NCBI RefSeq assembly: GCF_000315625.1
Contig: NW_005434633.1
Span: 324,130-388,129, forward strand
Source: Guillardia theta CCMP2712
Taxonomy: Eukaryota > Protista > Cryptophyta
Direction: 5' to 3'
Length of the DNA: 64,000 nt
Shown: piece after piece, positions 31,991 through 52,893 of the stretch
Position numbering within the stretch: the first letter of the stretch is position 1
Layout of the letters: the number at the start of each line of letters is the position of its first letter
Notes under the pieces: model-generated
Seen by the model: only the letters and a program-made list of their open reading frames with translations
Databases searched by the model: none
What the model was told of the DNA's origin: nothing
Made by a program: the position numbers and the translations under genes

Positions 31991-33358
31991 TCTGGTGGAG
32001 AGTGTACAAGGCCAAGAGAGAAAATCTCTTTGTTTCAACAGACAACTTCACACGGTTTGCAGGTGGAATGCGAGTCTTGTCGATCCTGTGCCAGAGCAAG
32101 GAGGCGAGAACGATGAGGTGGAGAAGTCAAAGAACAGAGGAAAGGAGAGGAGAGACGCAGGCTGTGAGACGAGCGGGAACGACAGGAAGAGGCGAGGGGG
32201 GGGGGGAGCGGCGACAGGAGCGGCGCTGGTCTGCGAGCTGGTTCGATGTGGCGGTGAATGAGGGCGATGAGGTGGCGATGACCGGTGGATCCAACGTGGG
32301 GCCGGTCGGGCCCGGCCCGGCGCCCGTACACTGACCGGAACGTGCTACGGCCCAGTCACTCCGCGGTTCGGCGGGCGGCCGCCGGGCCCGGGCCGGCGAA
32401 TGAGACGCGGCGTGTCACTCGCAGGTCACGGGGCAGCCGCTGAGACATTATTGTACGCTCGCGGCAAGCTACGACTTGGAGGGTGTCGCTGCTCTAAATT
32501 TCACTAGGAGGAGGGAAGGGAGGGGGCGAGAGAGGGAGGAAAGGGAGGGAGGGAGGGAGGGAGGGAGGGAAGGGAGGAAGGGAGGGAGTGGGTTACAACT
32601 CAGACATCGCTCCCTTTCAGCCACTGCCTGCTAACCAGGGGAGGGGAATTTCCTTTCGTTTACCTTCAAGGCTTCATTCTTCCTTACCCCTCCCACTACC
32701 GCCGGATAGCACAGGTACCCTGCCGGACACGCCCTGCCGGGCATGGCACGGAAGACGTCCGCCGGGCTGCAGTAGCGAACCAACCGGACACGCCGGCACA
32801 GCCGTGGCCCCATGGCATGATGGGCCCATCATAACGAGCCGCCTGAGCGGGTGCAGCTTTCGAGGAGACAACAATAGCTTCCGGACATCACAGTTTTCAA
32901 TACATAGTCGTGTTGGGCATGGAATCTGGTTTGACTGGTAACGTAGACGGTTGCAAGTGGTTGACACGGCGATTACATATGACATGGCATTGATGCCTGA
33001 ATTGCACTCTCAACCTCTGTAGCTCTGTACGCTGCCATGCAAGCAACTGTATCAATGGTGTGCAGATAGAGCTTGTGCGTCCCTGCCCCTTCAATTTCTT
33101 CGACCTCCTGCTGCATCCCCACTCCTGCTACAAACAGACTGATCCGCTCCGGACACACCAGCCACGTCGCCCAGGGTGATGCCATATTTTCGCCGAGCGA
33201 GAGCGATGCTGGCAGCGGTAGGGGCGCGGGGCCTGGTCGTCAGCAGCACTGTCAAGTTGGTGACTTGGTCTGGATCGGAGCACCTGGGTACTCAGACGCT
33301 CCACCTGCAGGAGCCGCGAGATCAGGAAAGACGGTAAGGCTCCATGCGTGGCTGATCC

Positions 33359-34783
33359 TCTTGCAACGATGGAGATCGAGCAAGGTGTCGTCTGACTTGA
33401 TCGCCTTGACGGTTACAAGCAGCTGAGGATGTGACATTGTAGGCATGAAATGACAGTGTGCAGCTACGAGCGAAGACGCATGCTTGTGTGATGATAGTCT
33501 GATCTTGAGTTTACTCCCAAGCCTCTGCTACAGCCTTGTACTCTCTCTCGCAGCTAGGTCTCCCTCCCCTAGCTCCCCCGCTCCTGCCACAAACAGACTG
33601 ATCCGCTCCGGACACACCAGCCACCCGTCCTCGCTGTAGCCGCTCCCGCCCCTCCTCCCTCCCTCTTCCTGCTCGCGCTCCTCCTCCTGACCGCCATGGG
33701 TCGCCCCCCCGCCAGGCTGAGGGTCTTGCTGCGCCGCTGGTCCGGGAGCGCGGAGGCGGCTGGTGGTGCTGGCCCAGGTCCGGCGGTTCCAGATGTCTCG
33801 GACGGCCTTGGGGGTGATGCCGTACTTGCGAGCGAGAGCGACGCTGGCAGCGGTAGGGAGCCAGGGCCGGGAGGGAGGATGGGAGAGGCGGAAGAGGAAG
33901 ATGTCGCGCGCGATGAGAGAGTCGATGCGGGCGCGAGGCCTGCCGGGAGGAGAGGGAGGAGAGGGAGGAGAGGGAGCAGTGGGAGGAGAGGGGGCAGAGG
34001 TAGCAGAGGGAGCAGAGGCAGTAGGGGGGGGAGGAGGGAGGGACATGAGGTGTGAGGAGCGTGCGAGGGAGGGAGGGAGGGAGTTGCCTTGAAAGAGTCA
34101 AGCCCGACTGCAAATCGCAACCTTTGAGACCAAGCGGTCGCATTAGATATGGTGGACTTAGAGGGCATCGTTTGAAATTGACCACAATAGATATTTAGGT
34201 GGTCAAATCTCAAACGTTGTTAATTTCAGTCGTCCAGAGTAGGCCTGATAGATATAAGCGTGACGGTCACGGCACCGAACGACGTGCTAGACGAACTTGA
34301 AGCTTTTCGCTGGGAGCGCAGGGAAATGACTCCTTTTAAACGCCTCCAGCCTCTCCTCGCTTCAAGCGCACCCTCCCGTCCCTGCCCCAGCCCTCCCCTC
34401 CCAAGCGCACGTATACTCCTGTCTCATCCTCCGTCTCCTCGTGCCCAGCGGCTGCCTCGATGACCTGCGTACCCTCTCACCCCTTGCATGTCCCTCTGCG
34501 GCCTGCGGCTCCCGTCGTCTGCCGGTCGCGACAGCTCGCGGCTATCCGAGCTTCCATCAGGCTCATCATGGACAAGTCGACCGTCACGTCAGCCATGGGC
34601 GAGGAGATGCGGCTATAGCGGGCCCTCCCGCGCCTACCGGGCCTTGTTGCTCATACAGAGCTTGTAGGCGTTGGGGAGCGGGTCACCCATGCTAGATGAC
34701 GCTGCTGCCCAAGGCATACGCCGAGGGGCGCAAGAGGCCTGACTGAGGGCGGCGAAGGATGCCGTGGCGTGTAGTCTGCTCTT
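33359..34783. repeat. Tandem duplication unit, copy 1 (empty-site allele)
   Basis: Near-identical to ~35873-37326 plus 46292-46384. Confidence 0.9.
33528..34046 (-). CDS. Small HTH-like protein (LARKYGITPKAVRDIWNRRTW), copy 1
   Basis: HTH-like LAxKYG..P..VxDIW..RTW motif after a Pro-rich N-terminus. Confidence 0.5.
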   Translation of the reverse strand: MSLPPPPPTASAPSATSAPSPPTAPSPPSPPSPPGRPRARIDSLIARDIFLFRLSHPPSRPWLPTAASVALARKYGITPKAVRDIWNRRTWASTTSRLRAPGPAAQQDPQPGGGATHGGQEEEREQEEGGRRGGSGYSEDGWLVCPERISLFVAGAGELGEGDLAARESTRL

Positions 34784-36024
34784 GATTGTGCTGCATCACG
34801 CCCACACACACGCCCGCAACGTGGTGATCCTCGAGGCTTTACAGGATGAACCTTAAGCGTAGCTCAACAAGAGCTTGCGTCGGAGTCTCTCTACAAAGAG
34901 GAAAGCAGAGAGTGACAGGAGGAGATCTATTTCGCTCCATTCTCCTACAACAAACACAACAAGCCGACACACACTGATATGGCACAACAGATGTGGCGCA
35001 CACACGAATGGAGAAGATGACCACCTAGTCCTAATGAGGATGATCCTTTTAAAGCTTCGAATGAGACAGGAGTACCGTCATGTGGCTGAGGGAGGTAGGG
35101 GTGCTCCGTCCTTTGAAGTTGACAAGCTTTTCTTCTCAGATGTGGAACATCCCTTCAGCACTTGGAGAGAAAACTTTGCTCTCTTGTAGGGAAGTGCCAG
35201 CTTGCCAGTGCTGCTGACGATGAGAGGGAAGAAGACGCGTCTCTGCACTATTGGCTATGGAGGCCACCGTTTGACGAACGAGGTTTTCAATGCCAAGCTC
35301 TTGCGTCCACATGTACAGCGGCTTGTTGCTCTTCAGCCTGTTCCCGGGTTGTCGCGAATAGGTCAGTTCCGAACACAAGTACGAGACAGCCCACTGTACA
35401 TTCTTCTGTGTAAACCTTTGTCTGACTCGGGCGCAGCTCCTTTGAGCTCCGACACAACGATGTGAGATGTCAGATCAGCACGCGTTTACGCACAATGAGT
35501 TAGGTAGGAGATTGGCTGCTTGCTTGGATGCCAGGCTGACTGCAGGTAGCAACTCGATGATGGCGGCTGGTTTGCGGGAGGACGGTCATTGGATCTCAAA
35601 GACCTCTCCGTTGGCTTTGCAGCTCAAGAGGACGAGAGCTAGCATGATACAGACACCGTATAATGCAGGAGAGCAAAGATCGCATGCCCAAACCTCTGTA
35701 AGATGGAAGGACGAGGGTCCTTTCATGCTCGGTAGACAGGAAGCAAGCATACAGCACAGGCAGGTAGTAAGCCCGTAGGAAGGAAGACCGAGCAGAAACC
35801 GAGGTATGCGGAAGAAAAGACAGCGAAGCAAGAACCAGCACCTGCATGATGAGGCCGAGGAGACGGTAACGCTCTTGCGACGATGGAGATCGAGCAAGGT
35901 GTCGTCTGACTTGATCGCCTTGACGGTTACAAGCAGCTGAGGATGTGACATCGTAGGCATGAAATGACAGTGTGCAGCTACGAGCGAAGACGCATGCTTG
36001 TGTGATGATAGTCTGATCTTGAGT

Positions 36025-36708
36025 TTACTCCCAAGCCTCTGCTACAGCCTTGTACTCTCTCTCGCAGCTAGGTCTCCCTCCCCTAGCTCCCCCGCTCCTG
36101 CCACAAACAGACTGATCCGCTCCGGACACACCAGACACCTGAGGGTCTTGCTGCGCCGCTGGTCCGGGAGCGCGGAGGCGGCTGGTGGTGCTGGCCCAGG
36201 TCCGGCGGTTCCAGATGTCTCGGACGGCCTTGGGGGTGATGCCGTACTTGCGAGCGAGAGCGACGCTGGCAGCGGTAGGGAGCCAGGGCCGGGAGGGAGG
36301 ATGGGAGAGGCGGAAGAGGAAGATGTCGCGCGCGATGAGAGAGTCGATGCGGGCGCGAGGCCTGCCGGGAGGAGAGGGAGGAGAGGGAGGAGAGGGAGCA
36401 GTGGGAGGAGTGGGGGCAGAGGGAGCAGAGGGAGCAGAGGGAGCAGTGGAAGGAAAGGGGGCAGAGGTAGCAGAGGGAGGAGAGGGAGCAGAGGGAGCAG
36501 AGGGAGCAGTGGGAGGAGAGGGGGCAGAGGTAGCAGAGGGAGTAGGGGGGGGAGGAGGGAGGGACATGAGGTGTGAGGAGCGAGGGAGGGAGGGAGGGAG
36601 GGTGTTGCCTTGAAAGAGAGTCAAGCCCGACTGCAAATCGCAACCTTTGAGACCAAGCAGTCGCATTAGATATGGTGGACTTAGAGGGCATCGTTTGAAA
36701 TTGACCAC
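36025..36708 (-). CDS. Small HTH-like protein, copy 2 (internal deletion gives a different C-terminus)
   Basis: Same RKYGITPKAVRDIWNRRTW core as copy 1. Confidence 0.45.
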   Translation of the reverse strand: MVNFKRCPLSPPYLMRLLGLKGCDLQSGLTLFQGNTLPPSLPRSSHLMSLPPPPPTPSATSAPSPPTAPSAPSAPSPPSATSAPFPSTAPSAPSAPSAPTPPTAPSPPSPPSPPGRPRARIDSLIARDIFLFRLSHPPSRPWLPTAASVALARKYGITPKAVRDIWNRRTWASTTSRLRAPGPAAQQDPQVSGVSGADQSVCGRSGGARGGRPSCEREYKAVAEAWE

Positions 36709-36854
36709 AATAGAAATGGCGTTTGTTCGTAAACCTCTAGGAGGTGGTCAAATCTCAAACGTTGTTAATTTCAGTCGTCCAGAGTAGGCCTGATAGATAT
36801 AAGCGTGACGGTCACGGCACCGAACGACGTGCTAGACGAACTTGAAGCTTTTCG

Positions 36855-36954
36855 NNNNNNNNNNNNNNNNNNNNNNNNNNNNNNNNNNNNNNNNNNNNNN
36901 NNNNNNNNNNNNNNNNNNNNNNNNNNNNNNNNNNNNNNNNNNNNNNNNNNNNNN
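36855..36954. other. Assembly gap (100 N)
   Basis: N run. Confidence 1.
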
Positions 36955-37326
36955 CCCTCCCCTCCCAAGCGCACGTATACTCCTGTCTCATCCTCCGTCT
37001 CCTCGTGCCCAGCGGCTGCCTCGATGACCTGCGTACCCTCTCACCCCTTGCATGTCCCTCTGCGGCCTGCGGCTCCCGTCGTCTGCCGGTCTCGACAGCT
37101 CGCGGCTATCCGAGCTTCCATCAGGCTCATCATGGACAAGTCGACCGTCACGTCAGCCATGGGCGAGGAGATGCGGCTATAGCGGGCCCTCCCGCGCCTA
37201 CCGGGCCTTGTTGCTCATACAGAGCTTGTAATCATACGACTGTTGCTGTAAATAAACTCGTATCTCACCTCACGCCGTCTCCTAGTCGCGGGGCTCCTTG
37301 TAGGCGTTGGGGAGCGGGTCACCCAT

Positions 37327-37550
37327 GTGTGTTATATTTTTTACCCCCTCACCCCACGTGTATATTTCGCACCATTTTGATGTGAAATTTTGCTATACTC
37401 AAAGTCTTGTGTATATCCTTACGTTCTCATAAGAGTTTCTGTCAATCTCTCAAAAAATTCCTTACCATTCCAATGTGAAAAAATTTCTCGCACCATAACA
37501 GTGTGGGATTTCTTCGAGAGATTGTGAGAATTCGCATGAGATAAAAAATA
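37327..37550 (+). repeat. Left terminal inverted repeat (224 bp)
   Basis: gtgtgttatattttttaccccc...gagataaaaaata is the reverse complement of 46068-46291. Confidence 0.95.
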
Positions 37551-37566
37551 ATGTTTAATCGGATGC

Positions 37567-40500
37567 TTAATTATTTATTCTATAGTGTCCAAGTGCCAAG
37601 CTACTAAATCCTAAAGATACGTCCCAATATCTTTTATCATCTGTATTACTCAAAGCAGTCTTAGACTGTTTTATTGTATAATTTTGAAGCTTAGAGCTTC
37701 TTATTCCATGTACCTTACAAGTTAGCGGTTTATTCTCAGAAACACATTTATCGTAGTCGTCATGTTTAATGTCAGTCTTTACAATAGCAGAAGGAACACC
37801 CTTCAATTTCTTCACATTTTCATATCCATCTTTCATGCTGTATTTTTTATAGGAGTAGCATTTTGGTCGTACTCCTATGAACTCTGACATAATTTTATCT
37901 CCTAGTTCATCCTTAAATTTGCCAATAACTTTTTTATTTGTTTCATCGTGTAAAGGGTTCTCTTTGCTGTACTCGCTCATATCAAAATGTTCGCGCATCT
38001 CCCATATATCGTTATAAAGATCTTCAGTATATACAGCAAAGAAGAAGCTATCTGTGTCTGTTGCTAGAAGCTTGAGATTTTCTTTATATTTTGGCTTCAT
38101 TATGTTGTAATAGAAGTCGTACATTAGATATTTAGACAGGTCCAATATAGAGAACCCAGCATATATTGGCTTATCTAGTTTTACGCTTTCTTCTTTCAAT
38201 GAAACTAATACCATTTCATTGTGTATAATTTCCCATTTAGTACAGTTAGGCTTATTTGAATATTTTTGTGCTTTCTCTAATGTAGTTGGTAGCTTTACCT
38301 TAACCCTATTTCTTACATTCTCCATAGTCTTACCAAATACAGCATTATTCATGAGCTTATAATAATCTTTTTCAAAGTCATTTTTTGATAATTTTCTTAG
38401 ATCAGTGTTTTTATCAATCCAAGGCTTAAGCCATGCTTGCTGTTTATATGTGATAACTCTATGTATCTTTGTAAGCTCAAGACCTAAACTAAGATATAGT
38501 TTCAAGTTTCTATAGTCTATAACATAATTTTTCTTATTGTGAAGAGTACCACATAGCTTTTCACAATTACCAAGTTTTATTTTTTCAGGAGCTAAAGGGT
38601 AATCATTATGGTAGTCATGTAATTCTTCTGGATATCTTAAATCTACTTCTAGAGTTGCCCCCTCATCTTCTCTTAAACTTTCAATATCAAATAGTTCAGG
38701 ATTTTTTAACCATGTAAAACCTCCAATGGGAAGAGGTAGAGACATAGCCCAACCGTAAAGATTATTAGCATCTCCATAATATAGATATGAAGATGGTTTA
38801 TTAGGGTTATAATCTTCAAGATACTTATTATTAGCCTTAAATTTCTTACTCATTATGATAGACTGACCGCCTCTTATTCCTGCCTCATAGAATTCATACA
38901 TTTCAATATCTGTCAAATTTTCAAGCTTGACATTTGTAAGCAAGAGCATAGCGGACCACCCATAGGAAGGAGTGCCAACAAAGAAGCAGGGGTCAAGTTT
39001 ATAAGTCTTAATGCTAAGCTCTATAAAGCTTTCAAATACATCAGCTAAGCCATTAACATCTTTATGTAGATATATATCATGATACTCACCAAATGTTTTT
39101 ATGTTAAGTGCTTCAACTGTTTCTAGAAGCTCATCATATTCTTCTTCAGAACATCCAGAGCTTCTTTTGATCTCAGACTTAAAGCTTTCTTTTTTAAGCT
39201 CAGTTATTGGATAGTCAAATTTTTCAATGCTGTCAAACCATTCATAAGGAAATATACCCTTACCATTCAAATATTTAAACTGTTCTTCTGTTTCACAAAG
39301 AGATCTCAAATATGTCCTTTTGTCTTTAGGAATGTTGTTTATAAGCTTTTCAAGTCCAGATGACATAAACCTAAAGCTATCTATAAAGGAGTATTGTCCA
39401 ACCTTGAAGTATTTAAATTTCTCGGTATTATCTGGAATTACGCTTATTTCTTTAACATTGTAGAATTTGCCAAATTCTGTCAAGAATAGATTTTTATCAT
39501 AATTGCTGTTATGAAATATGACTGGGATATCTATATTATTACGCTTTAGGTTAGCTTTTAAGTTACAATTTCTACACAAAGGCATGATGTAATCACCAGT
39601 GAAATGGTTATGATGCCTGCATTTATAATTTGTATGATCAAATACACATTTACAACAAGGACAATTTCTAGTTTTATTATACTCTTGTTTTTGCTCTGAG
39701 TTCATACAAATTGTTTTATAATCTTCATGTTCTTCAAGGGCTGAATTTATTGAGTTATTAAGTGCGTCTTTAATTCTCATAAGCAAGCTTGCAAACTCAT
39801 AAGCGGGTTTTTCTCCTCGATACAAGTAATCATAAATATACTTATCATTTACTTTTTTATGATCAAACCCAATAAGCGGAATGTCTGAGACAATCAATAT
39901 TTTAAAGCTGGCTGCCTTATGTTTACTGTAATATGAAGTGTTGCCATTCTTACTAATCTTTGTATCGTTATAATCTTGTATAGCCTCAAAGTCTCCATAT
40001 ATTCTAATAGGTAACTTATTAAGTGCGACATGCTTATTGAAGCTAATATAAATTTTTTCATTTTCTTCTTTTTGCTTTGGCATCTCAAGCCTTTGGTAAT
40101 TATTTGTAATACAGAACTTCTTATGATTTTCTAGGGCTTGCTTACTTTTAAAGTTACATGTACAACATATGTCACAGAATAACGACCGATTATCTGTTGC
40201 GTCATGTCCTAACAATGCGTTGATGCTCTTAATATATGAGTAATGCCCATCATGTAGCATTAAATTTATGCGTTTCAAGCTGTGGTCTTTATTAGAAACA
40301 TGAGATGTAACAATCTTTTTGTTAGTGATAGTATAAACATTTATTGCTAGGTTGTTTTTAGTCTCAAACTTACAAATATCTTTTACTTTCATAGGAAGCT
40401 CAAAGCCTTGATAATCCAATTTATCAAGATACTTATCATAGTTGCTTACTCTGTTAGGGTTCTTGATTTCTTTAGATGTTGGATAGAGATCCGCAAGAAC

Positions 40501-40734
40501 TGAATATAAGAAGCATTTATCATCTTTGTTCTGAATATTGATAATAGCTCGCTTATTCTTAACCCAATCTGGCAGCTCCTTAAATGTTCCTCCGCTGGTA
40601 ACCTGAGAATTAGCAAAGTATATCTCAATGTATCTTATTCCGACTGTGTATTTATATGTTAGATCTCGGATTAGTAATTGGTTTTTTAAAGTATTTAATA
40701 GTTCCTTCACATCTGTTTGATTTGTGATAAGCAT
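37567..40734 (-). CDS. polB: Protein-primed family B DNA polymerase (Polinton-type) with OTU-like and endonuclease VII-like inserts
   Basis: Exonuclease motifs YGDFEA, FHNSNYD, YLHKDV; polymerase motifs DANNLYG, KLMNNAVFGK, TDTDS; EndoVII-like CPCC..RHHNHFTG..LCRNCN; DDKCF...HY N-terminal domain. Confidence 0.95.
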   Translation of the reverse strand: MLITNQTDVKELLNTLKNQLLIRDLTYKYTVGIRYIEIYFANSQVTSGGTFKELPDWVKNKRAIINIQNKDDKCFLYSVLADLYPTSKEIKNPNRVSNYDKYLDKLDYQGFELPMKVKDICKFETKNNLAINVYTITNKKIVTSHVSNKDHSLKRINLMLHDGHYSYIKSINALLGHDATDNRSLFCDICCTCNFKSKQALENHKKFCITNNYQRLEMPKQKEENEKIYISFNKHVALNKLPIRIYGDFEAIQDYNDTKISKNGNTSYYSKHKAASFKILIVSDIPLIGFDHKKVNDKYIYDYLYRGEKPAYEFASLLMRIKDALNNSINSALEEHEDYKTICMNSEQKQEYNKTRNCPCCKCVFDHTNYKCRHHNHFTGDYIMPLCRNCNLKANLKRNNIDIPVIFHNSNYDKNLFLTEFGKFYNVKEISVIPDNTEKFKYFKVGQYSFIDSFRFMSSGLEKLINNIPKDKRTYLRSLCETEEQFKYLNGKGIFPYEWFDSIEKFDYPITELKKESFKSEIKRSSGCSEEEYDELLETVEALNIKTFGEYHDIYLHKDVNGLADVFESFIELSIKTYKLDPCFFVGTPSYGWSAMLLLTNVKLENLTDIEMYEFYEAGIRGGQSIIMSKKFKANNKYLEDYNPNKPSSYLYYGDANNLYGWAMSLPLPIGGFTWLKNPELFDIESLREDEGATLEVDLRYPEELHDYHNDYPLAPEKIKLGNCEKLCGTLHNKKNYVIDYRNLKLYLSLGLELTKIHRVITYKQQAWLKPWIDKNTDLRKLSKNDFEKDYYKLMNNAVFGKTMENVRNRVKVKLPTTLEKAQKYSNKPNCTKWEIIHNEMVLVSLKEESVKLDKPIYAGFSILDLSKYLMYDFYYNIMKPKYKENLKLLATDTDSFFFAVYTEDLYNDIWEMREHFDMSEYSKENPLHDETNKKVIGKFKDELGDKIMSEFIGVRPKCYSYKKYSMKDGYENVKKLKGVPSAIVKTDIKHDDYDKCVSENKPLTCKVHGIRSSKLQNYTIKQSKTALSNTDDKRYWDVSLGFSSLALGHYRINN

Positions 40735-40820
40735 AGCTTCTCCCGTTTCATAATCTGTTATTATTTCTTGATAATCATTGATAAATGAAGTTACAATCTT
40801 ATTTTTTTGTATTTTGTTAT

Positions 40821-41276
40821 CTATGGTTTCTTATTCTCCTTATCGAACTCGTTTAATACATTGCGCAATGTCTTTAAGTCTCTTCTATTGAACCACTCGT
40901 TGCCATAAGCAGGAGTTGTTAGCTCTTTCATCCTCCTCTTTGCTCTAAGTTCAAATCTTTCTTGTGGTGCTCCCTCTTGATTAGTTCCCTTGACATACTG
41001 ATACCATACCCTAAGATGTAAAACTCTAAAATCACCATCATAATATTTTTCATAGTCTGATAACCTTCTTATGATCTCGCTGCTGCCAACTGATGAAATC
41101 CCTAGCTTAATCAAGTCACCCTTACCATTGACAGTCTTAGGAGTTCTGATGACATAGAAGGCGGATGTATTTAGATATTCATCATATTTTTTCTTGAAGT
41201 CTAGCCATTTCATACCTAGGTCATCATTTGAGTTATATACTATTTCACCATTTCTGCTCCCTCTTAACTTGCTCAT
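40821..41276 (-). CDS. GIY-YIG superfamily (T5orf172/MUG113-like) nuclease
   Basis: FYVIR...LIKLGIS...RRLSDY...E...GNEWF pattern. Confidence 0.65.
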   Translation of the reverse strand: MSKLRGSRNGEIVYNSNDDLGMKWLDFKKKYDEYLNTSAFYVIRTPKTVNGKGDLIKLGISSVGSSEIIRRLSDYEKYYDGDFRVLHLRVWYQYVKGTNQEGAPQERFELRAKRRMKELTTPAYGNEWFNRRDLKTLRNVLNEFDKENKKP

Positions 41277-41300
41277 AATTTATTTACAGGTAATAAATAA

Positions 41301-41531
41301 ATGAACGGATCACAGAGGAATAAGTACCGATTAGATGAGGCTTACAGGAATAAGAAGAAGGCATATAGCCGTGAATATTACCGCAATAAGGTAAAACTTG
41401 AAAATTCTAAGCTGTACAAAGAGATTGCTATAATAAAAGAAAAACAAATATTATATTTTGATAATGACATAAGTCATGACACTAGCTTTTGGAGTGATTT
41501 CAATGCCAAAAAATTAAATATAGCTAAATGA
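41301..41531 (+). CDS. Small basic viral-type hypothetical protein
   Basis: 76 aa, YRNKKKAYSREYYRNK; TAAATG start context; divergent from the GIY-YIG gene. Confidence 0.55.
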   Translation: MNGSQRNKYRLDEAYRNKKKAYSREYYRNKVKLENSKLYKEIAIIKEKQILYFDNDISHDTSFWSDFNAKKLNIAK

Positions 41532-41752
41532 TAAAATATGAATTATGACAACCTCAACTGGGTTGCTGGTAGGGGGTATCAATTGTCTCAAAGAGAGTTA
41601 AGGAACACATCAAACCAACTCAGTGGTGAAATAGGAGCACAGAGAGATGAGATAATAGCTTACGTTGATAACGAGCTTAAGAAATATTATAATAAGGGTG
41701 AGATTGACTTTAGTGTTTATACCAAGAATGAAACTGATACAATTATTAAAGA

Positions 41753-42320
41753 TGAGAGCAATGTGCTATATGGCCATATAATGACACACTCAAACATTCT
41801 GTTTGATTACATCTAAAACACAAGTAATATATTATTAACATCTGCTATCAATGAAATTAATACTGAGAGCAATGTGCTATATGACCACATAATGACACAC
41901 TCAAACATTTTGTTTGATTACATCTATCATACCAGCAATATTTTATCATCATCTGCTAACAATGGAATTAACACTGAAAGTAATGTGCTATATGGCCACA
42001 TAATGACACAATCAAACATCTTGAATAATACTATATACAGTGAGAGCAATGTGCTATATGACCACATTATGACACATTCAAACATCTTGAGTACTACAAT
42101 ATACAATGAGAGCAATGTGCTATATGGTCACATCATGACACATTCAAACATCTTGAATAATACAATATACAGTGAGAGCAACGTGCTATATGGTCACCTC
42201 ATGACACATTCAAACATCTTGAATAATACAATATACAGTGAGAGCAATGTGCTATATGGTCACCTCATGACACATTCAAACATCTTGAATAATACAATAT
42301 ACAGTGAGAGCAACATATTG
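41753..42320 (+). repeat. Coding tandem repeat, 66-bp unit (ESNVLYGHIMTHSNILNNTIYS)
   Basis: gagagcaatgtgctatatg recurs at 66-bp spacing from ~41976 to ~42306, with two ~111-bp variants upstream. Confidence 0.9.
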
Positions 42321-43257
42321 CGAGCATGAGCAAATACCGACCTCATTTGACTGGACAACTCAAATAACAGGAACAGATAATATAATAGATGTAAATAAAC
42401 TTATTGATGAGAGAAACCTCTTGGCTGCCGATTTATCCTCAATCTTTGGCCATCCTTACACTTTCTTTGATACAACTGTTGAGCCTACCCTTATAAGTGG
42501 CAATGATTATTATCTTAAATTTACATATGATGGTATAGGAAATAGCACAACATACGAGATAAATTTTCATTATGACACTGTCTGCGATATTCTCATTGTC
42601 GGTGGTGGAGGCTCAGGCGGTCGAGGTGCTAGCTCAGCCGCAGGGGGTGGGGGTGGGGCTGGTGAGGTGGTACATCTAATTGATTACAGAATAGACACTG
42701 GTACGTACAATATAGTTGTAGGAAATGGAGGAAGCGACAGCAACGGTTATATATCATCGTTTGGAAACATTCAGGCTAACGGTGGTGGTAAAGGTGGGAG
42801 ACTTGCAAATGGCAACGATGGGGGGAGTGGTGGAGGAGGAACTTACCATATTCTAATGGAGGTGCTAGCGTCAAGCTTTCAAATGGATACGGAAACTCTG
42901 GCGGTAGCAGTGCCGGAGGATTTACTATAGGAGCCTCAGCCGGTGGGGGTGGTGGCGCTGGTGGTCCTGGAGATGATGCAAGCAGTTCCGTAAATCAAAC
43001 ACTGGGAGGTGTTGGAGTATCAATAGATATCACAGGAGAAGACATTATATATGGAACAGGTGGAAGGGGTGGGGATAAAAATAATAATGTGACAGGCATT
43101 GATGCTCAGAACCATTCAGGAGACGGCGGAGAAGGAGGAGGGAAGGGCAGCTTTTTTTTGAGTCGTTTCGGTGGAAAAGGCGGCTCCGGTGTGGTTATCA
43201 TACGTTTTAAGAAAGCGACGCTCTTTAATGGCGACTATAACAATCTCATCAACAAGC

Positions 43258-43797
43258 CTACACTAGCAACCATAGCAACAAGCGGCTTATACTCTGACCT
43301 TTCAGGAGCTCCAACACTGGCAACGGTAGCAACAAGCGGCTTATACTCTGACCTATCAGGAGCTCCAACACTGGCAACGGTAGCAACAAGCGGCTTATAC
43401 TCTGACCTATCAGGAGCTCCAACACTGGCAACGGTAGCAACAAGCGGCTTATACTCTGACCTTTCAGGAGCTCCAACACTGGCAACGGTAGCAACAAGCG
43501 GCTTATACTCTGACCTATCAGGAGCTCCAACACTGGCAAACATAGCAACAAGTGGCTTATACTCCGACTTAACAGGAGCTCCAACACTGGCAACTGTGGC
43601 AACAAGCGGCTTATACTCTGACCTTTCAGGAGCTCCAACACTGGCAACTGTGGCAACAAGCGGCTTATACTCTGACCTATCAGGAGCTCCAACACTGGCA
43701 ACGGTAGCAACAAGCGGCTTATACTCTGACCTTTCAGGAGCTCCAACACTGGCAACTGTGGCAACATCTGGCAGTTACAATGACTTAAGCGACAAGC
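43258..43797 (+). repeat. Coding tandem repeat, 10 x 54 bp (PTLATVATSGLYSDLSGA)
   Basis: Translation of ORF 43089-44606. Confidence 0.95.
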
Positions 43798-44604
43798 CGA
43801 CTATATTAAGCTATGGTGATATTAATGTACAAGCATATTTAACTAACAATAATTATATAACAAGCACCGACCAATACATACAGAGTGTTTCATCTGATTT
43901 TAATGTCACAGGTGGATTGCTTACATATACCGGTTCATCTTCACAATGGACCACAAGCGGGACAGATTTAACATATACCGGAAATATTTATGTAGATGGT
44001 AATATCATATTTACAGGTTATGAATATGACCAGACAACAAATGTATCTAATGGATACACCGCAATGACAGGCGCTCAGGTTTGGCTCCCATACACTGGCA
44101 CAGCTTGGTCTCCGATATACCATATCAACAATGTTGGATATATCTACACACAAACTTCTGGGGTGAATACAGTGGCAGATGAAACACTTACGTTTAATGT
44201 CCCAAGCGGTAAATCTCATATGTATATCAATCATCTGCCTTGGAATAATTGTGGGTATTTTGATGTATATGGGCTTCTTTCAAATGGGACTTGGTTATTT
44301 GTGTGCCGCATCAACAATTACAACCCTAACACACAGAACTCGACTGAACATAGCGGGGTTACAGTAAATGAGATAGGAGCAGTGAATAGGTTTGTAAAGA
44401 TTAGAATAGATGCAAGAAAGGGGAGAATTCATTTGATGGGCATAGGATGGTCGCAAAAGAAGCACGGTGTTACAAATGGCGGATGGACAGGATACATACA
44501 CTGGGACAACGTTGTAAGCATACCATCCATATTATCAAACCAAAATTTACTATTCAACAATATGGGAAACAATCACGGAACATATACAGACTTCAATAGC
44601 ATAT

Positions 44605-44934
44605 GAAGATATTCAGTATGTACCACCAGATAGGAACAGAACAAGAAGGGTTAAAGAGATCTCAACCAATACATTTGTAAGGATTAAGCATCAAGGTAAA
44701 TTTTATCTTGGAGTAATATATGATATTGTAATTAATAATAAGAAGCCGTGGTTTAGTGTTGTATTCTTTGACGATAAATATAATGTAAATGTTAGTGACG
44801 TAGGAGGTTATAAAAAAGATGAGGTCAAAGAAGGAATTTTAAATTTTGAGGAATGGGAGGATAAAAATCCAAAGTTAGCAAAAGAACTAAGGGCTACATG
44901 GTCAAGGGCTAGGAATGAGTATGGGTTACTCTAA
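44605..44934 (+). pseudogene. Start-less ORF remnant (~110 codons)
   Basis: Open frame ...RRVKEISTNTFVRIKHQGKFYLGVIYD...RARNEYGLL* with no ATG in this span. Confidence 0.5.
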
Positions 44935-45082
44935 ACAACTGTTTTAATTTACTAAACAGTGACTTCTTTTTTGGAGGGGTAAGCTTGACACCGATTGTGT
45001 CTAGCACATTAAATCTAGTCCAAGGTCTCTCTAAGGCCTCGCAATAATAAATTTTGCCTTCTTCTAAAAGCTGATAAACCAT
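44909..45082 (-). CDS. Small hypothetical protein (57 aa)
   Basis: MVYQLLEEGKIYYCEALERPW...; TAAATG start context shared with neighbours. Confidence 0.4.
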   Translation of the reverse strand: MVYQLLEEGKIYYCEALERPWTRFNVLDTIGVKLTPPKKKSLFSKLKQLFRVTHTHS

Positions 45083-45101
45083 TTATTAATACTTTACAAA
45101 A

Positions 45102-45902
45102 TTAGTAATTCATAATACATATGTGAGTTGTTGTCTTCTTCTTGTTTCCTTCACTACGTAAAGAGTTTTGATATTGCTTTTTGTACTCACCCTCATCTTT
45201 AATATAGTCCTTAAATATTATCTTAAAAAGCCAATTATTCTCGTGACATATTAGCATCTTGCTTTTAAAATTCTTAAAACCTATTTTTACGAAATATTCA
45301 TACATATTAAGCTTATCACTCGAATAAAAGTTATTATTTGATGCTATATATGGAGGGTCTAGAAACATAAAGACATTATCCTTATCATATTCTTGTATAA
45401 CATCGCAACCATCCTTATTCAATATGGTTATATCCTCTGATGTTAGAAAGTCATATATTGGATAATCTGAAAATTTAAACTTTCTTTTAAATACACTTTC
45501 AGGAGGAAATAAACCAACCCTAAAATTATAGTACCTATTTGCCATGATGTAACCTGTTAATGTTTTGCTTCTTGTGAATTTGTTGTATTCTTCTTTTGTT
45601 ATAATTATTTCTTCATCCTCATCTCTGATAACATCGTTAATCTCTTTTTCTATTTCATCCATCCGCTTTTTATCTCCTGATTTCACAAGGGTTAGAAGCT
45701 CATATAACTTATTGTCTAGGTCATTTAACACGTACTTAAATCTTTTTGTTGGGAATTGCTTCCATATGTAATAAGACACAGCACAAGAACCACAGAATGG
45801 CTCGCATACCGTGTCGATATTTTCAAAATTAATCTTAGAGTATATACGCTCTACCTCCTCCCTCTTATTACCAGCATATGAGAAGAAAAAATGGTTCTTC
45901 AT
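45102..45902 (-). CDS. Dam-like (D12 class) N6-adenine DNA methyltransferase
   Basis: FSYAGNK, EPFCGS (SAM-binding motif I), LNDLD, FLDPPY (motif IV). Confidence 0.9.
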   Translation of the reverse strand: MKNHFFFSYAGNKREEVERIYSKINFENIDTVCEPFCGSCAVSYYIWKQFPTKRFKYVLNDLDNKLYELLTLVKSGDKKRMDEIEKEINDVIRDEDEEIIITKEEYNKFTRSKTLTGYIMANRYYNFRVGLFPPESVFKRKFKFSDYPIYDFLTSEDITILNKDGCDVIQEYDKDNVFMFLDPPYIASNNNFYSSDKLNMYEYFVKIGFKNFKSKMLICHENNWLFKIIFKDYIKDEGEYKKQYQNSLRSEGNKKKTTTHICIMNY

Positions 45903-46067
45903 TTATTGTTGTGGCATATTTTATTTTTAAGCCCGCCTCAGAACATCCAAATTTGCTTTTTTTTTTTCCGTATAGTAGGTTTTGAACTGAGGAGTTTGAG
46001 GATGAAGAAAAAGGTTTCATCCACTGTCACAAATGGATATTTTCAATTTGAGAAGACAAACATTATA

Positions 46068-46291
46068 TATTTTTTATCTCATGCGAATTCTCACAATCTC
46101 TCGAAGAAATCCCACACTGTTATGGTGCGAGAAATTTTTTCACATTGGAATGGTAAGGAATTTTTTGAGAGATTGACAGAAACTCTTATGAGAACGTAAG
46201 GATATACACAAGACTTTGAGTATAGCAAAATTTCACATCAAAATGGTGCGAAATATACACGTGGGGTGAGGGGGTAAAAAATATAACACAC
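46068..46291 (-). repeat. Right terminal inverted repeat (224 bp)
   Basis: Reverse complement of 37327-37550. Confidence 0.95.
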
Positions 46292-46656
46292 GCTAGATGA
46301 CGCTGCTGCCCAAGGCATACGCCGAGGGGCGCAAGAGGCCTGACTGAGGGCGGCGAAGGATGCCGTGGCGTGTAGTCTGCTCTTTGTTAGGAAAACTTGC
46401 TACAAGTGTCTCTCGATCGGATCCCGGCAAGAAACCAAAGTTAGCGTGCGAAAACAATGCACAGTCCAACGGTACTTTACTTGAATCCAACATTAAAGAT
46501 AAAGAAAAGTAAGTAATATTTCTTCAGAAACGATACTGCCTAGGACACCTACTTAAGAGAGACAAAAAGTCAGCAAACATATCCGATCTTTTCGCTCCCT
46601 AGCGCTGTTAGATGAGAACACACTTCTCAGCCCCACCTCGCTGCAAACACCAAGAA

Positions 46657-47140
46657 TCAATGAGCATTCACAAGATTGAAATCACGAATTGTTTTCTTGA
46701 ACTCTGGAGTGCAAAATTCACGTGTAGACAACCAAGAATCATCCGACGACTTGTCATATCCTTTCCAACGAACCAAGCACTGCACACGATTACCTTTTCC
46801 ACGACGAGCCAGAACACGATCGACCTCGAAATACTGTCCATCTCGTTGAACTAAAGGCAAAGGTTGTGGTTCACTCTCTTCCAAAGAAACATCGCGAAAA
46901 TAGTAAAAACGAAGTTTCGCCACGTTGTTTATCACCATTCTCCGTTGAGAACTGGTCTTGCTCAGCCATCGGGAGAGTAGCCGGGGGCCACCATAGCTGC
47001 ACTTCTGGACCGAACGCAGAGATCGCGGCGCCTACCCACCTATGACGTGAGATGCGGTGAAATTTACATCGACCTTCCAGATACCCGATCCATGAGACGA
47101 CTGATCTCTCCATTGTCTGCTCGCCATTGTACTGCAGCAA
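46657..47140 (-). pseudogene. Chromodomain-containing ORF remnant, probably TE-derived
   Basis: YFEVDRVLARRGKGNRVQCLVRWKGYDKSSDDSW; an overlapping upstream ORF lies in another frame. Confidence 0.7.
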
Positions 47141-51369: not shown

Positions 51370-52893
51370 TGATGGAACGTATGCCAGCCGTGCCAGTCAG
51401 ATAGCGCCGAGTTAACAAAAACTCTCCTGTAAACCAAGACGACTTACGTGTCAAGGCGGCAATGTAGTACGTATGATGAAGAGGAGGCCTTCCTAGCCGT
51501 CTTGCTAAGGTCCCCTCATGTCTGGTTGCTTGGGTTTCACATCCTAGCATACAGTCTATCTCTCATGTGCTCCTCAATTCTGGTTTTTGTGTGCATTAAA
51601 CTCGGTCTTGAGCAAAAACTGTCTTGTTACAACTAAGGTCGATGTGACATCTGCGTGACTTTAGACTAGTACAAGTCTAACAAACTTGTATTCCGTCGGT
51701 TATGGGCCCCGATTACATGCTCAATCATGTTGATCTTATATTTGGTTAGTTGAATTGTTTACTGGAGTTTTTTCTTTCTTGGTATCGTTTCGTTACTGTC
51801 GAAAATTCATGCAATTCAAGCCTTACAAATTCGGATGACTCTTCTCTTCAATCAGGCTCTCTCTCTAGCCGCAAGTTGTTTAGGCCTCTCATCTCAGCCT
51901 CAATTTGTTTGATTGATCTTCGAATAGGAAAAACAAGCCTTCCCCAGCCAGATTGGTCGGTCGAATATCTGCTTAACCGTGTGGAAACGCACTTGAAGCT
52001 GATTCGATTTTAATCTTCTTGATCTTTGAGTAGGATCAAATGGAACTACCAGGAGATCTGGCGGAAGTTTCATGTCATGGAGCTAGGCTGTGGCATGCAT
52101 AACTGGAGCTACTTCTGGATCGGCGAACAAGGTACTACTGCACAACAATCTTCAGATGCCTTGAAACGGATGTTCCAATCTCGCGGCAGCAATCTCTGGT
52201 CACAAGTTCTTTACGGTTCAAAAAATTTATCTTTTGGTCTTCAAATGCCGGCGGGCACGCTCTCTCTCTCTCTCTCTCTATCTCTCTTATCTTCTCTCTC
52301 TTCAGACTCTCTTATCCTATACTCTATCTCTCGTCATTGCATCCGCTCGCCAGGCATCTCCCCTTATCTCTGTGCCGCACATCTAACAGCCCTGCATGAA
52401 AATCTTCTTCAGAATGGACAATCCTCGAATGGTTATTGCCCACTCAGCATGACTGTGAACTTGACGTTGTATCATCGTATCTTGACTTGGATCTGCTGAC
52501 ATTCTCTTGTTTGTGTGACTTTCTGACGTCCGATGTAACGTACTATTTCAGAAACTCGGGGGGAGGATGGAACGTATGCCAGCCGTGCCAGTCAGATAGC
52601 GCCGAGTTAACAAAAACTCTCCTGTAAACCAAGACGACTTACGTGTCAAGGCGGCAATGTAGTACGTATGATGAAGAGGAGGCCTTCCTAGCCGTCTTGC
52701 TAAGGTCCCCTCATGTCTGGTTGCTTGGGTTTCACATCCTAGCATACAGTCTATCTCTCATGTGCTCCTCAATTCTGGTTTTTGTGTGCATTAAACTCGG
52801 TCTTGAGCAAAAACTGTCTTGTTACAACTAAGGTCGATGTGACATCTGCGTGACTTTAGACTAGTACAAGTCTAACAAACTTGTATTCCGTCA
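51370..52893 (+). mobile_element. Non-autonomous Ty1/copia-type LTR retroelement (TRIM-like)
   Basis: Matching 327-bp LTR cores at 51371-51697 and 52566-52892; TG...CA outer ends; 5-bp TSD AGAAC (51365-69, 52894-98); PBS ggttatgggccc; polypurine tract ggggggagg; no gag/pol ORF. Confidence 0.92.

Follow-up and report, generated by a model that had tools for sequence, protein, structure and literature searches.

The 64,000-nucleotide stretch of Guillardia theta CCMP2712 DNA analysed here (the window; scaffold JH993005.1) contains an inserted, low-GC element of 8,965 bp at positions 37327-46291. It encodes a family B DNA polymerase of the protein-primed type (pPolB), is bounded by terminal inverted repeats (TIRs) and has no recognisable capsid, ATPase or integrase gene. 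Is this element a distinct, minimal kind of replicon, or is it what remains of an ordinary Polinton-like virus (PLV)? A preliminary description of the locus named it minimal and offered both a helper-dependent linear plasmid or satellite and a deletion derivative of a PLV. We favour the latter with a probability of roughly 0.7, and propose that the element derives from an ordinary pPolB-type PLV of marine algae, probably of ~20 kb, integrated recently and has been both reduced and rearranged internally. The deletion-derivative proposal is supported by genes shared with PLVs, by a missing gene block, by an additional gene in sister sequences, by an inversion and by two broken genes. The label minimal did not hold up, as it suggests a designed architecture and what the locus contains is a damaged subset.

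The bounds of the element are given by its TIR pair, its GC profile and an empty copy of its target site. The two 224-nt TIR arms, at 37327-37550 (+) and 46068-46291 (-), were correctly described as matching. They are identical (100% complementary to each other), and their terminal 34-mer is found at two places only within the window (expected by chance: 0). The outermost bases carry a short GT reiteration. In protein-primed replication, terminal reiterations serve the sliding-back step, and the GT reiteration may be such an aid. GC content is 0.30-0.46 within the element versus ~0.55 in the flanks. On its left, the element adjoins one of two copies of a ~1.4-kb host segment. Copy 1 occupies 33358-34783 (+), and copy 2, after a 1.1-kb spacer, occupies 35872-37326 (+) and resumes at 46292-46384 on the right of the element, which places the empty and the filled target ~2.5 kb apart. 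Copy 1 is uninterrupted where copy 2 breaks (between 34690 and 34691), and the 30 nt on each side of this point are identical to the left and right flanks of the element. Since copy 1 runs through the break point of copy 2, the inserted unit is exactly 37327-46291, with a 0-bp target duplication and a 0-bp target loss.

The two host copies have 8 mismatches over 1,175 ungapped positions (99.3% identity), plus indels in low-complexity parts. The insertion either postdates a very young host duplication or, if the tandem arrangement is an artefact, hit one of two near-identical alleles; the copies may be genuine paralogues, or a pair of alleles that the assembly placed in tandem. The claim that the insertion is recent is strongly supported by the identical TIRs together with this near-identical empty paralogous site, and the presence of filled and empty targets within one 64-kb window makes the integration visible at base resolution. 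An rve integrase would leave a duplication of ~6 bp, and no such Polinton-type target-site duplication (TSD) is present. TSD-free integration has been reported for YREC-type cryptophyte PLVs by Bulzu et al. (PMC12220804). Entry at a blunt, base-exact site without duplication would be as reported for tyrosine-recombinase PLVs or for end-joining capture, not as for rve integrases, and it is such a route that we infer for this element.

Homologues of the pPolB, the methylase, the Gly_rich_2 fibre and the T5orf172-type gene of the element are all found within a single group of PLV-like genomes, which bear TIRs and measure ~14-22 kb. Five related contigs (L002, L005, L006, L017 and L035) share a syntenic block for a protein of 431-488 aa, one of ~300 aa that carries a conserved Walker A motif, one of ~285 aa and several smaller proteins, and no counterpart of this block was found anywhere in the element. 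As every recognisable gene has a homologue in one PLV-like group, and what is missing is just the block by which that group is defined, the element is read as a PLV derivative. Among these genomes, the metagenomic L035 (20,348 bp) was recovered from 24 or more assemblies and has TIRs of 131 nt that are 92% identical. Its genes include a T5orf172+Agenet gene, a Gly_rich_2/Peptidase_S74 fibre of 1,652 aa, a Dam methylase and a GIY-YIG gene, with a pPolB at the terminus. L006 also encodes a Gly_rich_2/Peptidase_S74 fibre, of 2,270 aa, and the 13.6-kb contig L017 combines a homologue of the split gene described below with Tlr6f (DUF5754) and a pPolB of another clade. Searches of the block proteins of these relatives against Pfam and PDB, by sequence and by profile, gave no match that would name a capsid protein or an ATPase. 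From its size, its syntenic position and its Walker A neighbour, the 431-488-aa protein is presumably a capsid candidate. One relative of similar length to the element, L002 (9.2 kb), was considered as a minimal relative and rejected; it has no TIRs, carries genes of the block and is a fragment of a larger genome. Cryptophyte PLVs span 14-40 kb (PMC12220804), and G. theta is already known to hold PLVs (PMC4642659, PMC12220804), with three complete and two partial ones reported (PMC12220804). These were found with capsid baits, and this locus may be among them.

The syntenic block occurs with two unrelated pPolB clades, and pPolB genes move between capsid lineages. Both observations would also suit a primitive self-synthesising element that was never encapsidated and served as the source of the PLV polymerase, which would make the locus ancestral rather than derived. 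We consider this very improbable, as the element has a gene for a virion fibre, together with accessory genes of the sort that complete PLVs typically carry. Moreover, its genes are nested within PLV diversity and have low ratios of non-synonymous to synonymous substitution (dN/dS) relative to sisters with larger gene sets, two of its genes are freshly broken, and its nearest pPolB relatives already suggest a placement among complete PLV genomes.

The absence of a capsid, an ATPase and an integrase, noted in the preliminary description, was borne out by searches of Pfam, PHROG and NCBIfam, in which ORFs (open reading frames) of at least 50 aa on both strands gave no capsid, ATPase, protease, rve integrase or tyrosine-recombinase match. 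The pieces of broken genes were searched and compared one by one, unjoined. A Walker A motif is absent from all six frames of the element, and no ORF for an RNA polymerase is present. With respect to a capsid or penton protein, the element has no unassigned coding space of at least 110 codons and no homologue of the 431-488-aa protein, the fold of the ~270-aa fibre head not having been examined. The element is not a Polinton by definition, since it has no rve integrase and no TSD (TIRs and a pPolB are present), and it is not a complete PLV, since it has no capsid or ATPase genes.

The pPolB gene (37567-40734, -) is an uninterrupted ORF of 1055 aa, as had been claimed. Its own sequence has no match in Pfam, NCBIfam or PDB sequences. 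Its homologues number more than 5,000, with PF03175 and PF02945 precomputed for many of them, including proteins from Caenorhabditis briggsae, Pinctada and large ENA contigs. One relative, P0079, with 40% identity along its full length, reaches 77.6 bits on PF03175. An alignment of the pPolB with 12 relatives revealed that acidic and aromatic residues in the three Exo motifs (I-III) and in motifs A, B and C, as well as the KxY lysine, are invariant in 13 of 13 sequences. Because direct family searches with the pPolB are blank, its membership is shown through its homologues and this motif conservation. With all catalytic motif residues kept, the pPolB looks catalytically competent. An Endonuclease-VII-like (HNH-type) zinc-finger insert lies between Exo I and Exo II, at residues ~370-395 (38.5-39.7 kb region), and its His, Cys and Asn residues are likewise invariant in all 13 aligned pPolBs. 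This insert is the only nuclease candidate of the element besides the split T5orf172-like gene.

At its N-terminus the ORF begins at the conserved core. The closest relatives have ~150-215 extra residues there, 26-33% identical among themselves, of which no remnant is found in the element, while some more distant relatives (1,045-1,066 aa) likewise do without them. The short N-terminus is a candidate defect, and loss or an original state would both fit. In reviews (PMC4405056), the predicted terminal-protein domain of such elements is placed within their pPolB genes. The shortened N-terminus could matter for priming. The nearest pPolBs, at 47-49% identity, lie at one end of the metagenomic contigs L006 (20,132 bp) and L005 (22,128 bp) and on the fragment L002. 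At the DNA level the only close relative of the pPolB gene is a 2.7-kb metagenome contig, L004, with 80% identity; dN/dS relative to the longest ORF of L004 is 0.12. The relative on L004 is itself divided into several ORFs, and is either decayed or poorly assembled.

Internal rearrangement is evident from a gene that is present in two pieces. Just upstream of the pPolB lies a 151-codon ORF with eight homologues, of which the complete ones are 248-264 aa long and 51-96% identical to it (the L017 homologue marks the lower value, 51%). The complete homologues reach ~105 residues past its C-terminus. The coding sequence for these missing ~105 residues lies at another place in the element, in a stretch of the opposite strand that is free of stops and has no start codon. 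The gene, of a ~257-aa family, therefore spans 40821-44934 with its pieces on opposite strands at the two ends, enclosing the small ORF76 and the fibre-like gene. It is whole on the sister contigs L022 and L020, and the copy on the metagenomic L020 (P0266) is 96% identical in the N-terminal part. L020 and L022 each align colinearly to two window segments on opposite strands, which indicates that one internal inversion, of a segment containing ORF76 and the fibre-like gene, cut the gene once. L020, L021 and L022 have a common local order of fibre, small ORF and divergent 257-aa gene. The two pieces have dN/dS values of 0.02 and 0.15 relative to the sisters.

What the split gene encodes was approached through structure, as neither the 151-codon ORF nor the full-length P0266 has a sequence match in Pfam (PF01541 and PF10544 included), PHROG, NCBIfam or PDB, and the 151-aa ORF has no match in IMG/VR. 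In the AlphaFold model of P0266 (pLDDT 77.7), the N-domain is alpha/beta and the C-domain is a small beta-barrel that resembles chromo-barrel and Tudor domains (6bph; probability 0.99, TM score 0.62 on the target). The 151-aa piece was modelled with AF2 at a pLDDT of 81.7 and a pTM of 0.81. A PDB fold search with this model returned nothing, and neither model had a nuclease match in the PDB. Compared with predicted viral structures, the 151-aa model matched dozens of phage and giant-virus proteins named T5orf172 or GIY-YIG (probability ~1.0, E 1e-4 to 1e-2). An hhalign comparison of the family profile with the T5orf172 region of the 207-aa T5orf172+Agenet protein of L035 gave E 1.6e-4 at a probability of 50%. 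The family thus appears to join a T5orf172/GIY-YIG-like N-domain to a Tudor/chromo-barrel-like C-domain, and there is moderate support, from predicted structures, for the 151-codon ORF being GIY-YIG-like (T5orf172 branch) at the fold level. The earlier mention of a GIY-YIG-like ORF is therefore right as to fold-level likeness, but the ORF is not a whole gene, only the N-terminal piece of a split one.

The second broken gene is the fibre-like gene (41538-44606, +), which had been described as decayed and which is interrupted three times or more, by an in-frame stop and by two changes of frame. It contains tandem repeats of 111, 66 and 54 nt, a Gly_rich_2 domain spread over two ORF pieces, phage fibre-like PHROG matches and a ~270-aa C-terminal head. 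The Gly_rich_2 piece is 44% identical to part of the L035 fibre, and in the sister contig L022 the counterparts of the first two fibre pieces lie within one ORF. In IMG/VR and the JGI metagenomes, the only match to the fibre head was to its ~20-residue C-terminal tail, on unrelated large contigs. These last residues (~44545-44606) are 83-89% identical to ORF ends on otherwise unrelated contigs of up to 199 kb (L008-L016, L026-L034), and the tail appears from its distribution to be a widespread short motif.

Could the internal damage be, partly or wholly, an artefact of assembly? Repeats may have been misassembled or haplotypes or copies collapsed, and the host copies may be alleles placed in tandem. 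The gene with the interruptions abounds in tandem repeats of 54, 66 and 111 nt, error correction was reported to remove many of the stop codons in endogenous viral elements of protists (Bellas et al.; PMC10120064), and the empty and filled host copies are just ~2.5 kb apart. On the other hand, the tandem repeats do not extend to the junctions of the inversion, and the split gene aligns cleanly to the sisters in both of its pieces. With 8 differing sites and several indels between them, the host copies are no mere doubling of a single set of reads. Even if all interruptions were errors, the block, the ATPase and the integrase would still be missing within TIR-to-TIR bounds that are fixed by the empty site. 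We consider an artefact an unlikely explanation of the damage.

The intact gene at the right end, a D12-class (Dam-like) N6-adenine DNA methyltransferase of 266 aa (45102-45902, -), matches PF02086 with E 2.5e-16 and 60.6 bits (cut-off 22) over profile positions 1-244 of 253. Its score on the TIGR00571 dam model is under the cut-off. The full-length PF02086 match agrees with the intact Dam-like methylase of the preliminary description. Three sister methylases are 87%, 79% and 70% identical, with dN/dS values of 0.05-0.10, and the methylase on L035 is 53% identical. The surroundings of the sister methylases differ from those in the window. In L023, the match to the window ends ~60 nt upstream of the methylase start, where the window has its TIR and L023 a gene of more than 483 aa that is transcribed divergently (L023 3-1451, -). 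In L024 and L025, the match ends just past the methylase stop and is followed by a homologous gene of more than 528 aa (L024 983-2566, +). The large gene thus lies on opposite sides of the methylase and in opposite orientations in L023 and L024, and at the corresponding positions the window has the TIR or a 57-codon ORF. The large gene has no match in Pfam, PHROG, NCBIfam or PDB. Blocks with Arg/Lys/Arg are kept between its two copies, and from these boxes, recognised by eye, a tyrosine recombinase is a candidate identity that we offer as a lead. It would fit both the absent TSD and the distinct tyrosine recombinase that G. theta PLVs are reported to carry (PMC4642659).

The only relative of the methylase in IMG/VR, 50% identical, is on the giant-virus metagenome-assembled genome (MAG) contig L007 (GVMAG-M-3300021962-8). 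There (L007 5277-6482) the methylase adjoins an ORF of 63 aa in which the N-terminal motif of ORF76 recurs, which suggests that the methylase and an ORF76-type gene move jointly between giant-virus and PLV gene pools. L007 was also considered, by its size (9,092 bp), as a sister element and rejected, as it has neither a pPolB nor TIRs.

Comparison of the window with its sisters bears on the age of the damage. In every window-versus-sister gene pair the synonymous divergence (dS) is at least 0.6, with dN/dS of 0.02-0.15. Low dN/dS at this dS indicates that nearly all of the divergence accumulated under constraint and that the split of the T5orf172-like gene is very recent. Taken with the identical TIRs and the 99.3% host repeat, these values point to a young insertion with young damage. 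We lean slightly towards a reduction that came before integration: the site is very young, yet ~10 kb was lost, a segment was inverted and at least three interruptions arose, and the survivors, both ends and the polymerase, are what a replicating defective genome must keep.

A plausible history follows. In the parent virus, the polymerase would have started DNA synthesis at the TIR ends with a protein primer, the methylase would have marked viral DNA, the fibre would have attached the particle to the cell, and the T5orf172-type nuclease may have acted as a selfish or homing gene. The element would then have lost the whole presumed morphogenetic block, including the Walker A ATPase, and kept both ends, the polymerase and the methylase. 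The present copy would have no particle, packaging or integrase of its own; at most, a complete relative, where there is one, might allow its ends and polymerase to be replicated or serviced. In its current state it is probably a young endogenous relic.

Several observations sit less easily with a derivative of an ordinary PLV. No full-length parent of this lineage was recovered, and the close sisters (70-96% identical) are all at most 2.8 kb long. Both TIRs, an intact polymerase and a methylase would also be expected from selection on a replicating capsid-less form. The single-copy status comes from protein clusters, JGI metagenomes and IMG/VR, with the rest of the Guillardia genome outside the searches. 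Assembly errors may account for some of the interruptions of the fibre gene, which are placed within tandem repeats or close to them. Lastly, it is size, synteny and the Walker A neighbour, with blank Pfam and PDB searches, that make the 431-488-aa protein a capsid candidate and its block a presumably morphogenetic one.

Some of these points would suit an established capsid-less replicon, akin to a linear plasmid or satellite, for which the 9-kb form is normal. Such a replicon would be copied by its own pPolB and TIRs and would borrow particles and integration from a PLV or other helper; specifically, it might travel in the particles of a complete PLV and enter chromosomes at blunt breaks without target duplication. 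The perfect TIRs with a reiterated terminal dinucleotide, the catalytically complete pPolB, the methylase under purifying selection and the exact TIR bounds of the unit in a very young site are all consistent with this. From those bounds and the youth of the site, the many lesions would probably predate the insertion. Published screens, all capsid-baited, would miss such elements, and a 2026 preprint (10.64898/2026.10.13.758929) argues that replicase modules of such viruses are able to move independently. However, the evidence is of a single copy. A lone member, encoded on one contig, makes up the pPolB cluster, and a search of the JGI metagenomes and IMG/VR with the terminal 24-mer of the TIR gave no match. 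Furthermore, sisters at 79-87% identity keep extra large genes beside the methylase, the fibre gene is of no use without a particle and is broken here, and the pPolB is without the N-terminal region common to its closest relatives. The T5orf172-like gene, constrained until very recently (dN/dS 0.02) and now split, looks like a fresh accident, not a settled architecture. On balance we judge both the replicon and its proposed mode of travel unlikely, if less so than an assembly artefact. If true, they would define a PLV-derived satellite or plasmid of an alga, of a class invisible to capsid-baited surveys.

As a derivative of an ordinary PLV, the element would provide a clean, datable case of a PLV stripped to its replication ends and polymerase. 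Surveys based on capsid genes miss such remnants, so PLV-derived DNA in protist genomes would be undercounted. If more copies of this architecture exist, the element would stand naturally between PLVs on one side and, on the other, pPolB replicons that have no capsid, such as linear plasmids and capsid-less Polintons. Phylogeny has so far been the main ground for inferring that transition. The particular value of this locus lies in its base-exact empty site and its clear subset relation to one PLV group.

The remaining features of the element are small. ORF76 (41301-41531, +) encodes a basic protein of 76 aa and is kept beside the fibre gene in the sister contigs; its N-terminal motif is the one that recurs beside the related giant-virus methylase. 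The 57-codon ORF (44909-45082, -), between the split gene and the methylase, has no homologues and is of doubtful status as a gene. In the public annotation of the element the pPolB is the only real gene called. That annotation also calls a 173-aa gene antisense to the fibre repeats (43235-44234, -; L001 6501-7500), in all likelihood a false model prompted by the repeats.

Ordinary proteins of eukaryotes are encoded in the flanks: a calpain, an OGT-like glycosyltransferase with TPRs, a WD40 protein, a ClpX-like AAA protein and GILT. No tRNA and no Rfam family was found in the window. The host repeat was considered as a long terminal repeat retrotransposon and rejected, as it has no TG..CA ends and no reverse transcriptase or integrase ORFs. 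A 93-aa ORF with a Chromo domain (PF00385, 30.1 bits versus a cut-off of 25.1) lies ~365 bp beyond the right end of the element (46657-46938, -); the ORFs around it have no reverse transcriptase or integrase domains, and no gene model is called there. To the right of the WD40 gene, a 300-nt direct repeat with 100% identity occurs at 51371-51670 and 52566-52865 (starts 1,195 nt apart). Purine-rich (GGA/GAG)n and complementary low-complexity arrays are abundant in the host flanks (15-30 kb and 58-61 kb), with 85 copies in one repeat family.

How does the element compare with known systems? The closest are the marine and cryptophyte PLVs (such as L035, L005, L006 and L017; Yutin et al. 2015, Bulzu et al. 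2025), which like the element are linear with TIRs, low in GC and equipped with a terminal pPolB, and which share with it the long Gly_rich_2 fibre, the Dam-type methylase and the T5orf172-type gene with a Tudor/Agenet-like tail. The YREC-type PLVs further resemble it in their TSD-free integration in algal chromosomes. In contrast to these viruses, the element is less than half their size, is without the shared block and an integrase, is inverted internally and has two broken genes. Capsid-less Polintons/Mavericks, of which an expansion that retains the integrase is described for Trichomonas vaginalis (PMC4405056), likewise combine a pPolB and TIRs in a eukaryotic chromosome with no morphogenetic module. 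Related pPolB+DDE 'replication-integration modules' without a morphogenetic module are described in the preprint cited above, which proposes that replicase modules can move alone. Both have an rve/DDE integrase, ~6-bp TSDs and many copies, none of which applies to the element, and unlike capsid-less Polintons the element still carries a (broken) fibre gene and is known from one copy. The linear mitochondrial and cytoplasmic DNA plasmids of fungi and plants are similarly small, with TIRs, a pPolB and no capsid genes, but they are extrachromosomal and usually have an RNA polymerase, whereas the element is chromosomal, has no RNA polymerase gene and has a PLV-derived gene set. Finally, the internal-deletion derivatives of TIR transposons and defective viral genomes keep their cis ends, lose internal genes and have rearranged segments, as is seen here, and their spread, like that of the element, would depend on a complete relative. 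Unlike them, the element encodes its own polymerase, so that only packaging and integration would be needed in trans.

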